Below the pieces are notes generated by a model. The model ran no database searches, had not been told where the DNA came from, and worked only from the letters and a program-made list of their open reading frames with translations. From Adineta vaga (taxonomy: Eukaryota > Animalia > Rotifera): a stretch of DNA of 64,000 nucleotides. How positions within the stretch are numbered: the first letter of the stretch is position 1; each line of letters begins with the position of its first letter. Below, one piece after another: positions 35,351 to 39,368 of this stretch. The DNA lies in assembly GCA_021613535.1 (NCBI GenBank), contig CP075493.1:14632001-14696000 (forward strand). The letters are read 5' to 3'. Made by a program: the position numbers and the translations under genes.

Positions 35351-36388
35351 TTACCACCTGCGTTGCACGTTGCGAACAACTATTTCACGTTTTTTTTCTT
35401 CAACAAAGACAACAATCTGATCCGGTGGCAATGACAGTTGAGCAAACTGTTCGGTATTTCTCTCACTACCTTTCTTCATAGATTCAGCCAATTCAAGCTG
35501 AACACTTTTGCTCGGAGCATTTAAGGATTTTTCGACTCTTTCAGTGGTTTGTTTAAATTTCATCTGTTGTTGTTTCCAATGCTCATTAAACTTTATAATC
35601 TTCGAGCTATAATATGGCGTTGTTTCATTTGTTTCCATCGGTAAACTCTCTTGCTCTATTGGAGATGATCGTCGAGGAGGTAAATTGATTATTTGTCTTC
35701 GAGAATTTTCTACTTCTTGTAGTTGTGCTAATAGAGCATCTTGATGATGTTTACTTTGTGATTTTAATTGAGCAATTTCATCTGTAATTAATTGAATATC
35801 ATGTTTCTTTGTGTGTAGAGCAGGCTCACATTGTTCAACAATCTCATATAGACGATCATGCATAAACATCTTATATTCATCCGAAGTATTATGTTCAAAG
35901 AAACAGATACGATCTACATCAACTTTAATGAGTTCACTTAATAGATGAGCTGTGTTAGCTTCATATTGTTCAGGTCGTTCAGATGGAATTCCATTGACAA
36001 TAATAAATAACGATTGATGCTCAAATGCATATGCATCATTGATATGTAGAAAAGCAACTACATCTTCATCAGGTATTCGACCATTGCGATGTCCAAAAAC
36101 AAATATAACAATCGAAAGAGAATGTTGTTCAAATGCTTTCATAATTTCCTCTCGATTTTCATCGACTAATTGTTGATTAGCTTCGATTAAGCCAGGAATA
36201 TTTGCTATAGCATAAATACGATCTCCATTCTTGCTCGACATGTCTTTCCATTCTGTACGTCGTGTCACTGATCGAGCTGAAAATTTACTTTCAAATGCTT
36301 GATCATCATTTAATAGACGATTAGCCAAGAAGATCTTTCCAACTCCACTATTACCCAATAGAATGAGTCCACAAAGGTTTGTTGCCAT
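35351..36388 (-). CDS. AIG1/GIMAP-like GTPase paralog B with a degenerate P-loop
   Basis: GLILLGNSGVGKI, SARSVT, IANIPGL, GRIPDED; coiled-coil tail; a second frame stays open to a TAA at 35209, so a frameshift is possible. Confidence 0.8.
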   Translation of the reverse strand: MATNLCGLILLGNSGVGKIFLANRLLNDDQAFESKFSARSVTRRTEWKDMSSKNGDRIYAIANIPGLIEANQQLVDENREEIMKAFEQHSLSIVIFVFGHRNGRIPDEDVVAFLHINDAYAFEHQSLFIIVNGIPSERPEQYEANTAHLLSELIKVDVDRICFFEHNTSDEYKMFMHDRLYEIVEQCEPALHTKKHDIQLITDEIAQLKSQSKHHQDALLAQLQEVENSRRQIINLPPRRSSPIEQESLPMETNETTPYYSSKIIKFNEHWKQQQMKFKQTTERVEKSLNAPSKSVQLELAESMKKGSERNTEQFAQLSLPPDQIVVFVEEKKREIVVRNVQRRW

Positions 36389-36485
36389 AGCAAAACTTTC
36401 TCTATCTAAAATGTTCAATTCAGAAAATAAATGTATTCTTAACTAACATGATGATTTATTTTTATTGTTAAAAAGAAAAAAATAA

Positions 36486-38352
36486 TCAATGCTTTGCTAA
36501 ATAATTTGAGATTGTTTGTTGAACAATCTGAACAAGTTCTTCAAAACGAGCACGATCTGTAGAACCTGGGGTAACAATATCATCGAAACTGGCATCGATT
36601 TCCGTAGCACATTGTCGCCATAGAAGATGAAGAAATTTGAACATTCGCGGGCAATGAGCCAAATTAGGAAACATATCGAAAACACAAAATTCATTGGCAT
36701 GATAAGTATGTCCAGAGTCGAGGACAATATTGTAAACCTTGAGCGATGGATCAGCTTTAATACAAGTCAATTGATTAATTGATACGGATGATGGTCGATT
36801 TTGATCAAGAGATTGTAGTTCCATGTTAATACGTAATGGTTTAACCAAATCACGAAGAGATGGTTCTTCATCTTCACTAGCTTGTGGATCGATAGCTGCC
36901 ATTGTTCTACATATTTAAAAAGATATGCACATAAAGATGTCTTTCGTTATTTGTACAAAGCATATATGAACTTACCCATTCGTTGTTAGAAACACATGTT
37001 CTGAGGTGAAAAACGGTGGGATGTTATTAATACCATATAGTGATCGACCATGAAGTTGTTCAATATCAACGAATATTACCGTATGACGTTCACTATTAGC
37101 ACCTACAACTATATCACCAATCTGAATCTTTTCTATAGGCTTGTCAGTACCATCATCCATACGAATCATAGTTCCAGCAGTGAAACACTAAACCATATAT
37201 AAGATTAAGAAAATGATCTAATGATAACTTACACTAGAGGACTCTGTCTGATAGATAACTTCAGGTTTACGATTTGAAAGTTCTTCAAGCTTAGCCCGCA
37301 GTTCATTTTGCGCTTCGATTGATCTTTGTAATTGTTTTTTAATCTCATTCGCTTCATTTTTGTTCTTATTTTCTAGTTTATTTTCCAATCGCTCATGTTC
37401 TGTTTGCATGTCTTTGAGTTCTTCTTCTAAACGAGACAATTGCTCAGCATGTGCTTGTTCCATCTGTTTCATCTGATCATTTTGAGATTCACGCATTTTT
37501 TTAGTTTCGACAGTTTGTCGTTCAATAATCCGATGAAACTGATCGCTTTCATCTGTTTGACGAGCAACGAATTCATCATATCGTTTTTGATGCTGACGAA
37601 TTTCTTCTTGAAAAAACTTCTTGTTCTGTTCGAATGCTTTGGTCATTTCTTCAATTTGTTGTTTCAATGCAGCAACTTCATCAACTCTTAAATGAATATC
37701 TTGTACTTTCATATGTTTAGTTGGTGTTAATTCAACAATAGCACGTAACAATTGTTCTTTTAAAGCTTGTCGTTCTTTTGAATTGCCTCGATCGATTTGA
37801 TTAAGAAAACAAACACGTTCAGGAGAAACAGAAATTTGAATGATATCTTGGATCATAAGCATCACTTCTCCTTCATAATTCGATGGTCGATCTTCGGGAA
37901 GACCATTTACAACTAAAAGAAGTGATTTGATATTCAAAGGATATGCCTTATTAATAGCTGTAAATGCGACAACATCTTCATCACGTATACGACCATTTTG
38001 TTGACCAAAAACATAGATAATTAATGAATTTGGTCGTTTAGAAAATGCATGGTCAATTTCACATTTATTAACATTAACACGAGCCTTAAAAAAAGATGCA
38101 ATGAAAACAATGTTTTCAAGCAATGTTAAGACTTACTTGATCAGCTTCGATTAGACCTGGAATATTAAATATAGCATAACGATGATTTTCAAATGTGATT
38201 TCTTTAAATTCAGTTCGATGTGTAACTGATCGCGGAGAAAATTCATGTGTGAATACGTCTTCACCCAAAAGAACATTGCCCAAGAAACTTTTACCAACAC
38301 CACTATTACCAAGAATAATTAAACCATATTGACTCTCATCAGCAGACGACAT
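36486..38352 (-). CDS. AIG1/GIMAP-like GTPase, coiled coil, Hint domain and helical tail (566 aa, 4 exons)
   Basis: Exons 38352-38137, 38084-37233, 37187-36976, 36906-36486 join in frame through GTAAGT...AG introns; GNSGVGKS; CFTAGTMIRMDDG..KPIEKIQIGDIV; FTSEHVF; VYNIVLDSGHTYHANEFCVFD. Confidence 0.88.
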
Positions 38353-38467
38353 CACTAAAGTTTAATAGAAAAAAAAGACAATCGTTAACTAACTATAAGG
38401 ATATCCATGATTTTACGCTTTTTATTATCATCCAGATTAACGCATTAAAGCGTAAAAGTAAATATAG

Positions 38468-39368
38468 TTGGAAAAACAACAAAAAGAAGATGTTGAAACA
38501 TTTCGAGTGATGCATCGAGCATTTGCATTCTCTTCCGATTCATTACTCATCATTGTCAATGGATTACCTACTAGTCGACCGACTACATATGATGAACTAA
38601 CTCGAAAGACATTGATTGAATTACTTGATATGAAATCTTGTCAAATCTGTTTTATTGATCATCTCAAGTCATTTGATCAACATTTAATCGATGCTATTCT
38701 ATCTGTTCGTCCTCGAAAATATATCAACAATAATGAAATTTGTTTAATAAACGATGATATTCATCAATTAAAGACTAATTACGACGAACTTTATATTGCA
38801 ATGAATAACGAACGAAACGAACATGATGATACTATTATACAAATAGAACGAAACTATGAAGTGGCTGAACGGTTATCCGGTAAGATAAATTTCATTTTAA
38901 TCGAATAAATAAATCTTTAACTTTTCAGTATTACAACGGTTATTTTGTGAAGCTAAATTTAGTCTTCGTCAATTAAGTGCATTAAATGAACAAAAAGAAC
39001 ATTATAATAACATTATTGAATCCTGGCATGCAGAAGAAATCGGCTATGAAGACAATCCTACTTCCAATCATTATCAATTAGCTATTCGAAACAAAGAAAG
39101 TATTCAGAAACAAATATCGGAGAATGTAATTAAGCAACGTTCTACATCCGTTGTTCTTGATCGATGTCGGAAAGATATTGAACAAACATGTTATGAACTT
39201 GAACAGATCTATAATGAAAAATTCGATTCGCAATTGGAACTCGTACGAGAATATTCGAAACTTTTTGATGATTTACGATATGATTCATTGATTAAGAATG
39301 TTCGACGTGATTTTCTCAATGATTTGTATATTTTCAATTGTCAACATTTTCTTTGTCAGGATAAATAA
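38468..39368 (+). pseudogene. 5'-truncated AIG1-like GTPase paralog C (no G1-G3), 2 exons
   Basis: EDVETF...SLLIIVNGLPTSRP aligns with paralogs A and B; second exon 38929-39368 is open and coiled-coil-like; no room upstream for a P-loop exon. Confidence 0.65.

Follow-up and report, generated by a model that had tools for sequence, protein, structure and literature searches.

What might a Hint domain be doing at the end of a cytosolic, immune-type GTPase? The question is raised by a gene on the minus strand of a 64,000-nucleotide stretch of the genome of the bdelloid rotifer Adineta vaga (GenBank assembly GCA_021613535.1, contig CP075493.1, positions 14,632,001 to 14,696,000; hereafter the window, in which position 1 is the first letter). 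The action of the GIMAP/AIG1 GTPases is poorly understood, and many of them need a C-terminal membrane anchor. The thioesters formed by Hint domains are known to meet different fates, among them hydrolysis in bacterial intein-like (BIL) domains and esterification to cholesterol in Hedgehog. The gene described here appears to encode a cytosolic GIMAP-like GTPase, specific to bdelloid rotifers, that carries at its C-terminal end a putatively autoprocessing Hint domain of the bacterial intein-like kind and a conserved helical tail.

The fusion gene extends from an ATG at 38352 to a stop at 36486 and consists of four coding exons preceded by an exon in the 5' untranslated region (5'UTR); its coding sequence of 1701 nt specifies a protein of 566 aa (~64 kDa). 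From the N- to the C-terminus, this protein comprises a divergent AIG1/GIMAP-like GTPase, a charged helical region, the Hint domain (residues 357-504) and a tail of 62 aa. The coding exons (E1 to E4) and their contents, all on the minus strand, are as follows. E1 (38137-38354; 72 codons, with the ATG at 38352-38350) encodes the P-loop, switch I and a G3-like NIPG motif, and is joined at 38137/38084 to E2 (37233-38084), the first part of which (37681-38084) encodes the remainder of the divergent G domain, with 42% identity to the adjoining AIG1-type gene, and the second part of which (37233-37680) encodes the charged helical region that ends in ...QTESSS356. The N-terminal half of the Hint domain lies in E3 (36976-37187), with codons for Cys357 at 37187-37185, Thr417 at 37007-37005 and His420 at 36998-36996. 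The C-terminal half, with blocks F/G VYNIVLDSGHTYHANEFCVFD and Asp504 at 36677-36675, occupies the first part of E4 (36675-36906; E4 in full, 36486-36906), and the second part of this exon (36489-36674) encodes the tail, M505 to H566. A stop codon at 36488-36486 is followed by a short 3'UTR with an AATAAA signal, the two together spanning 36443-36488, and a contig of run X11 extends as far as 36443.

Every intron of the fusion gene has GT..AG borders. The 45-nt intron at 37188-37232 is in phase 0 and sits between the codons for S356 and C357, so that the border between two exons falls precisely on the bond predicted to be cut. This intron and those at 36907-36975 and 38085-38136 are exactly absent from contigs of runs X1 and X2 (study P1) and X11 (study P5), and the contigs of X1 and X2 also lack the 5'UTR intron at 38355-38416, thereby joining the 5'UTR exon (38417-38474), which contains a short upstream open reading frame (uORF), to position 38354. 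Single contigs of 1746-1760 nt cover the gene from the GTPase through the tail. The RNA status of the three runs is a guess made by the tool that was used, and it is backed by the intron-less contigs themselves; a DNA-like run, X9, yielded an unspliced contig over 36562-37636 that retains the 45-nt intron. Contigs and not raw reads were examined, and minor isoforms (for example, with intron 2 retained, which would yield a protein consisting of the GTPase alone) are invisible to contigs. The original prediction of a four-exon GTPase-Hint fusion in a single open reading frame (ORF) is thus borne out by intron-less contigs from three runs and two studies. The 37233>37187 junction, whose non-use had been put forward as the observation that would speak against a fusion, is used in contigs of X1, X2 and X11, and the predicted peptide strings proved to be correct (...QTESSS356 followed by C357FTAGT, then FTSEH, ...HTYHANEFCVFD504 and the 62-aa tail ending in AKH).

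The possibility that the fusion is an artefact of the gene model, with the GTPase ending at a stop codon at 37218 and the Hint domain belonging to a separate gene or a pseudogene, might draw on public Rotaria records that give the equivalent of E4 as a separate protein of 138 aa (P0155, P0158), and on the length of the introns flanking E3, which reaches 0.9-1.7 kb in some species. Against this stand the single contigs that join every exon at canonical sites, as the DNA run does not, the absence of a start codon ahead of Cys1 in E3 (and of any upstream in-frame start after 5'UTR splicing), and the reading frames, which are open in all of the orthologs. An artefact is very improbable, and for the present genome it is already refuted by the spliced contigs.

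Profile and sequence searches were run exon by exon. E1 matches Pfam AIG1 (PF04548) at 5.6e-9 (36.1 bits, cut-off 27), and E2 alone has no Pfam match, for which reason we refer to the G domain as divergent. An intron-less E1+E2 ortholog (L016:364-1152) matches GIMAP4 (3lxx) at 1.5e-10 in the PDB, as well as GIMAP7, GIMAP2 and GIMAP5. The canonical G1 P-loop GxxxxGK[ST] is present as GNSGVGKS at residues 15-22. The region ahead of the Hint junction consists of ~144 aa of which 41% are charged, with 0 Gly, 1 Pro and a periodicity of 3.6 residues, as determined from its composition and periodicity; its length differs among orthologs. The 566-aa protein has no hydrophobic N-terminus and no signal peptide, since its P-loop starts at residue 15, and no transmembrane-like segment, the highest Kyte-Doolittle score of any 19-mer being 1.32, at the P-loop strand. 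As had been expected for it, then, the fusion protein is by its sequence cytosolic.

To which lineage of Hint domains does the C-terminal module belong? The original prediction had drawn on Hedgehog-type Hint domains, and on this point the results lead elsewhere. Among Pfam families, E3 is matched by Hom_end_hint (PF05203) at 1.4e-7 (32.2 bits, cut-off 32.1), by Hint_2 (PF13403) at 2.5e-5, below its cut-off, and by Hint (PF01079), the Hedgehog (Hog-type) profile, at 8.5e-5, with 22.7 bits versus a cut-off of 29.7 and over profile positions 13-53 only; E4 has no match to PF01079 or to any other Pfam family. Scanning the whole A. vaga genome (100.8 Mb in 6 contigs) with PF01079 gave 60 matches, which come from over 40 Hog-type modules scoring 35-147 bits, as compared to 22 bits for the fusion locus, and a search of the same genome with E3 found only E3 itself and a single paralog. 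In an exhaustive phmmer search against 1.84 billion representative sequences, E3 yielded 893 matches at E<=0.001, the best of which are Hint domains, 44-57% identical, of bacterial and metagenomic proteins that often contain them in tandem arrays; the named sources are a Flavobacteriales metagenome-assembled genome (MAG) and Mucilaginibacter. A profile search of loci gave three bacterial loci, including one from a Bdellovibrionales MAG that is 50% identical over 68 residues. By hhalign, the E3 family aligns to this bacterial and metagenomic Hint clade over 70/70 columns (score 180, E 7.6e-39, probability 99.96%) versus a score of 41.9 over 31 columns for the Hog modules of its own genome. Of the 150 best E3 matches, 58 contain Hint repeats whose C-terminal halves can be aligned to E4, with the alignments ending at residues 76-78. 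A sequence search of the PDB with E3 gave only weak matches to PI-SceI and Hedgehog (E 0.05-0.5), together with a spurious match to a repeat protein. On these profile and alignment data, the Hint domain is of a bacterial intein-like or BIL-like kind and not of the Hedgehog/Hog type.

C1, T61 and H64 of E3 (C357, T417 and H420 of the protein) show no variation among 7 orthologs with 54-67% identity and are kept in the paralog, as expected from the initial reading of the Cys1 nucleophile and the block-B TxxH motif as intact. The terminal His-Asn of inteins is, as had also been noticed, replaced by Phe-Asp. In a joint alignment, the relatives in the bacterial clade end in ...TYxANxxLVHN, the fusion family in ...TYHANEFCVFD and the paralog in ...TYIANDYVCRH, and this difference points to an ancestral Hint domain of the intein-like or BIL-like kind, from which the bdelloid proteins would have arisen through loss of His-Asn and addition of a tail. 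For a bdelloid, such a domain might plausibly have come from bacteria by horizontal transfer. Asp504 (D77 of E4), at the position of the intein Asn, is invariant in 27/27 sequences of the E4 alignment, and the +1 residue is Met in the same 27/27. Splicing requires Cys, Ser or Thr at +1 (PMC4031507), and the invariant Met implies that protein splicing is excluded, as judged from these sequences. A loop motif, DPQASEDEEPSLR (E4 residues 5-21; 36843-36893, minus strand), varies hardly at all among bdelloids and matches the motif GWKS.DP.AT..ENP.L found throughout the clade; it hence represents a clade signature instead of a new insertion. Asp397 (D41 of E3) was considered as an equivalent of Hedgehog D46 and was rejected, being invariant in the orthologs and absent from the paralog and the clade relatives.

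The most highly conserved stretch of the 27-sequence E4 alignment lies beyond the Hint domain, in the tail motif DMFPNL..YPRMFKFLHLLWR.CA..D..FDD..TP..DR.R. The ratio of nonsynonymous to synonymous divergence (dN/dS) is ~0.17 for the tail and 0.11-0.37 for both halves of the Hint domain, with dS near saturation, and by these estimates the Hint domain is under purifying selection, which includes the residues predicted to activate the N-terminal bond. An AlphaFold2 model of E4 alone, built from the 27 sequences, places helices at E4 residues 86-99, 108-111 and 116-138, in agreement at low confidence (pLDDT, the predicted local distance difference test score, of 61) with the helical tail of ~60 aa proposed at the outset. 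The first tail helix is amphipathic, basic and aromatic in composition, with a basic polar face and a hydrophobic moment of 0.55. The tail is present as a single copy in the genome. It has no sequence relatives in the PDB, where the E4 profile gave chance matches only, and an Atlas feature search found no cluster for it at >=0.9. A possible identity with the sterol- or adduct-recognition region (SRR/ARR) of Hedgehog proteins was pursued and discarded: hhalign gave a probability of 0.13% against 12 rotifer Hog C-termini, and the lead that had suggested it consisted of an Atlas cluster of rotifer PF01079 fragments at 0.86, below the 0.9 level used for leads, and a Pro-Arg-aromatic likeness seen by eye.

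What is established for Hint chemistry elsewhere allows a mechanism to be proposed. Cys1, acting with Thr B:7 and His B:10, drives an N-S acyl shift and activates the N-terminal scissile bond, and cleavage at the C-terminal end requires the cyclisation of Asn or, rarely, of Gln or Asp (PMC4031507). Where a +1 nucleophile is lacking, as in Hedgehog and BIL2 (PMC8616854), Hint domains are known to cut off or transfer the part that precedes them. By analogy, Thr417 and His420 of the rotifer protein would strain the peptide bond between Ser356 and Cys357 and make it reactive, and an N-to-S acyl shift at Cys357 would generate a thioester carrying the GTPase and helical part (~40 kDa). Resolution of this thioester by water or another nucleophile would then separate the GTPase part from a Hint-tail fragment of ~24 kDa. 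The conserved tail probably sets the fate of the thioester, through the choice, place or timing of the nucleophile, or else works jointly with the Hint domain once cleavage has taken place. What was observed, namely the structure and transcription of the gene, the identity of its domains and the conservation of its catalytic residues and tail, supports this reading; the occurrence of cleavage itself and the agent that resolves the thioester are what we infer from it. We consider it rather probable that Cys357-dependent cleavage takes place at S356/C357 with the tail governing its outcome. Attachment of the GTPase to a lipid or a protein is possible, by analogy with other Hint systems.

Several features of the protein weigh against this interpretation. 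Position 4 of block F is Asn and not the usual Asp, the penultimate His has been lost in favor of Phe, and E4 modeled by itself gives a poor structure (the pLDDT of 61 mentioned above). The Asn at F:4 is a property of the entire clade, including the members that keep ...VHN. In the GTPase, the G3 motif is non-canonical, with NIPG aligned to the DTPG of GIMAP4 and GIMAP7, and there is no clear G4, the FTRKDD of GIMAP4 being aligned with FNN---LP; these features make nucleotide hydrolysis uncertain. Both NIPG and the missing G4 motif are found as well in the orthologs and in the neighboring AIG1 gene. The term "GIMAP-like" would accordingly seem to fit the family and fold of the protein and not necessarily its enzymology.

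The main alternative is that the Hint domain is silent, that is, a folded interaction or regulatory module in a protein that works uncleaved. The loss of His-Asn and the Asn at F:4 could be read in this way, and degenerate Hint-like folds that do not cleave are known (for example, AXH-type Pfam matches occur among the relatives). The residues C1, T and H, on the other hand, are needed only for activation of the N-terminal bond, and they have stayed invariant across orthologs in spite of saturated synonymous divergence and are kept in the paralog too, all of which leaves a silent Hint domain as a tenable but minority explanation. It is also conceivable that the activity resides at the other end of the domain, where cyclisation of Asp504 would free the 62-aa tail peptide (D504/M505), either alone or in combination with N-terminal cleavage. 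Such an outcome would agree with the invariance of Asp504 in 27/27 sequences, with the ability of Asp or Gln to stand in for Asn in the third step of the intein reaction and the lack of a penultimate His in ~5% of functional inteins (PMC4031507), and with the cutting of BIL domains at both ends, as reported by way of citation in PMC4031507. The replacement of the penultimate His by Phe or Ser speaks against it, as does the paralog, which has Arg-His and no Asn, Asp or Gln at the corresponding positions, so that the Asp is not a feature common to this small family; overall, we regard release of the tail in this manner as rather unlikely.

Two further explanations concern the nucleophile that might resolve the thioester. 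In a transfer like that of Hedgehog, the tail would recruit the hydroxyl of a lipid or sterol and the GTPase would become lipid-anchored, replacing the C-terminal transmembrane anchor of GIMAPs. The lack of a +1 nucleophile, the position of the conserved ~60-aa tail where Hedgehog has its SRR/ARR, the amphipathic basic and aromatic helix in this tail, the absence of a transmembrane segment from the fusion protein and the existence of Hog-type AIG1-Hint fusions in other organisms are all compatible with lipid transfer. The Hint domain, however, is not of the Hog type, its tail fares poorly against rotifer SRR/ARR sequences (the hhalign probability of 0.13%) and has neither a PDB sequence match nor an Atlas cluster at >=0.9, and Asp41, which might have mimicked D46, is not kept in the paralog or the clade relatives. 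Lipid transfer is for these reasons unlikely. A target protein might instead provide the nucleophile. BIL2 of the Tetrahymena protein BUBL1 forms isopeptide bonds to its substrates through aminolysis of the thioester by lysine (PMC8616854), and this same BIL2 is the closest structural neighbor of the paralog's Hint domain (E 2e-7), from which one might imagine covalent attachment of the GTPase to a lysine of a target protein without ATP. The Foldseek ranking is shallow, inteins and Hedgehog being within three orders of E-value, BIL2 moves a small ubiquitin-like domain and not a 40-kDa GTPase, and any target would be hypothetical; we find conjugation of this type improbable.

The fusion gene has orthologs in other bdelloids. 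Public collections contain 26 homologs of E4 at 51-74% identity, including those of Rotaria sp. Silwood1 and Silwood2, and six ortholog contigs (L015-L020) were compared. The order E1-E2-E3-E4 is present in L015-L019, and the short contig L020 has E3-E4 only. The intron ahead of Cys1 occupies the same position in all of the orthologous loci examined, with an AG acceptor directly 5' of the Cys1 codon in 6/6, and the residue at -1 is Ser wherever the end of E2 can be read. The introns that flank E3 vary in size, measuring ~1.3 and ~1.7 kb in L017 (Rotaria sp. Silwood1, GCA_905331535.1, CAJNZB010000406.1) versus 45 and 69 nt in A. vaga. In the Rotaria annotations the last exon, with the Hint C-half and the tail, stands by itself as the 138-aa "unnamed protein product" mentioned above, and the fusion consequently seems to be absent from these public Rotaria collections of proteins. 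A search with the 355-aa neighboring protein as query returned only the orthologs of that neighbor and no full-length bdelloid AIG1-Hint model, which is not proof of absence.

How does the rotifer gene compare with what has been described elsewhere? The original prediction stated that no AIG1-Hint fusion was known, and this statement has to be withdrawn. Burglin (2008, PMC2362128) describes GmGIN1 of Glomus mosseae (Requena et al. 2002) as an AIG1/IAN-like GTPase joined to a bona fide Hog domain, which contains motifs J, K and L and matches Hedgehog by BLAST at 7e-18; it has no signal peptide, so that the protein is presumably cytosolic. Four transcripts of Acropora millepora combine AIG1 with a C-terminal pfam01079 Hint domain (Weiss et al., PMC3723955), an AIG protein of Biomphalaria glabrata has "hint/hedgehog" (PMC7053062), and a 2025 study of amphioxus lists AIG1+HINT and CARD+AIG1+HINT architectures (PMC12373286). 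In the literature searched, these fusions are sequence-level records, with no biochemical test of any AIG1-Hint fusion found, and a search of the bdelloid literature found no paper mentioning one.

GmGIN1 and the rotifer protein share an N-terminal AIG1/IAN-like GTPase, a C-terminal Hint-based module and the lack of a signal peptide, but they differ in that the fungal module is a Hog domain, whereas the rotifer Hint does not reach the cut-off of PF01079, belongs to another clade and is followed by a tail unrelated to SRR/ARR. The coral, snail and amphioxus proteins have the identical domain order and also belong to lineage-specific, tandemly expanded families of immune-type GTPases; unlike the rotifer protein, their Hint domains are reported as pfam01079 (coral) or "hint/hedgehog" (snail), amphioxus often adds a CARD, and a tail of the rotifer type is reported in none of them. 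Hedgehog itself (HhC, 1AT0) resembles the rotifer protein in its Cys1 and TxxH, in having neither a +1 nucleophile nor a terminal Asn, in the extension of 60-70 aa that follows the Hint domain, and in the predicted product, which would be an N-terminal domain freed through a thioester. Hedgehog differs in being secreted, in having Gly at -1 and in using D46 and an SRR for cholesterol; the rotifer protein is predicted to be cytosolic, has Ser at -1, no conserved D46 equivalent and a tail that is not SRR-like, and its Hint domain bears only weak sequence and profile similarity to Hog. With BIL domains, and in particular BIL2 of Tetrahymena BUBL1 (6Y75/6TMM), it has in common a non-intein Hint of a type that cleaves off or transfers the preceding polypeptide although no Cys, Ser or Thr stands at +1, a best structural match by way of the paralog, and nearest sequence relatives that are bacterial or metagenomic. 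In those bacterial relatives the terminal His-Asn is retained, and the domains are often found in tandem arrays or at an extreme C-terminus, in contrast to the Phe-Asp, the conserved tail and the GTPase fusion of the rotifer family, and inteins differ further by the +1 Cys, Ser or Thr for which the rotifer protein has Met. New relative to the known fusions are the Hint lineage, the tail and a sister gene with a MACPF domain. No AIG1-like GTPase was found within 4 kb upstream of any of the 36 Hog-type modules of the A. vaga genome that were checked, in the regions flanking the ten best Hog loci or among 235 other proteins retrieved. With no GTPase beside the 36 Hog-type modules, the rotifer GTPase-Hint fusion looks to be independent of the Hog-type fusions.

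The sister gene is the sole paralog of the fusion in this genome and lies 0.64 Mb away on the plus strand, at 15332476-15335443 of contig C1 of the searched genome, G000 (3477-6443 of the extracted locus L003); an upstream exon at L003:2644-2850 that encodes a P-loop, GLTGAGKS, enlarges its span to 15331643-15335443 (L003:2644-6443). Its ORF of 989 aa contains a DTPG motif, a MACPF domain (4.5e-15), a poly-Pro linker, SSG followed by the Cys of a Hint domain that is 40% identical to E3, and a tail of ~150 aa. The two genes have in common a P-loop GTPase-like N-terminus, the SSG-then-C or equivalent Ser-rich approach to the same clade of Hint domain and a first tail helix of similar pattern, and they differ in the MACPF and poly-Pro segments inserted between GTPase and Hint, the length of the tail, and the Arg-His at the positions of Phe-Asp. 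Both GTPase-Hint genes of the genome thus carry a Hint domain of the bacterial-like clade. A model of the paralog's Hint domain, based on alignment rows that are fragments of the fusion family and of the clade relatives, has pLDDT values of 89-97 over residues 1-160, with the tail helical at low confidence. Foldseek places BIL2 of Tetrahymena BUBL1 first among its structural neighbors, then the Prp8, DnaB and RecA inteins and, at lower ranks, a Clostridium BIL domain, Hedgehog 1AT0 (6.5e-5) and a Vint domain. Another protein, P0097, also of 989 aa, had been taken for the paralog and was dropped, being an unrelated Gly-rich Hint protein.

Taken with the Hog-type examples, the bdelloid genes suggest at least two origins of the GTPase-Hint fusion, each from a different lineage of Hint domains, and such repeated origin points to a functional reason and not to an accident. 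In its broadest form, the proposal would be that AIG1/GIMAP GTPases of the immune type have captured Hint domains repeatedly and in independent events, of the Hog type in Glomeromycota, corals, molluscs and amphioxus and of a BIL-like, perhaps horizontally acquired type in bdelloids, for an ATP-independent, one-shot covalent attachment; we offer this as a speculation that is more likely to be wrong than right by a wide measure. If it were true, Hint chemistry would attach the GTPase to a membrane lipid or target protein, the bdelloid tail would be a new kind of adduct-recognition region, and the sister gene, which ties a bacterial-like Hint module to a perforin-like domain, would arm or anchor a cytosolic MACPF pore-former by the same device. 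With its 566 aa, its lack of a signal peptide and its conserved tail, the fusion protein provides a compact test case for the Hint processing of a cytosolic immune-type GTPase.

Some further observations concern the surroundings of these genes and their relatives. The nearest Hint relatives, P0001 (Flavobacteriales MAG, MBL4703729.1) and P0002 (Mucilaginibacter angelicae, WP_377022980.1), are giant bacterial proteins with 5-7 Hint domains head to tail, each ending in VHN with the next Cys following immediately; one of them is annotated as "homing endonuclease". The Hog modules of the rotifer genome, numbering at least 40 by PF01079, represent an expansion like that of nematodes (examples are L004-L013), and some are in tandem (C1:15037258 and 15038902; C2:1118981 and 1120278; C6:9613033 and 9614893). 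A dynamin-like ORF adjoins the paralog (L003:7524-9392, minus strand).

In the window, the fusion gene is followed on the same minus strand by a tandem neighbor at 35351-36418, an AIG1-type GTPase gene without a Hint domain, and this synteny is kept in other bdelloids: the neighbor is present in L015, L017 and L018, an antisense E2-like match is found at its position in L019, and the contigs of L016 and L020 end before reaching it. Orthologs of the neighbor are annotated as "AIG1-type G domain-containing protein" in Adineta steineri, A. ricciae and Rotaria. A third AIG1-like gene fragment, at 38468-39248 on the plus strand, lies head to head with the 5' end of the fusion gene; it is 27-36% identical to the G domain of its neighbors and has a spliced transcript contig of its own (intron 38879-38927). 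The uORF in the 5'UTR of the fusion gene consists of 5 codons (ATG ATA ATA AAA AGC, then TGA), formed by 38417-38432 joined to 38354-38350, and its TGA overlaps the main ATG (TGATG) once the 5'UTR intron has been removed, an arrangement that may have a role in translational control.

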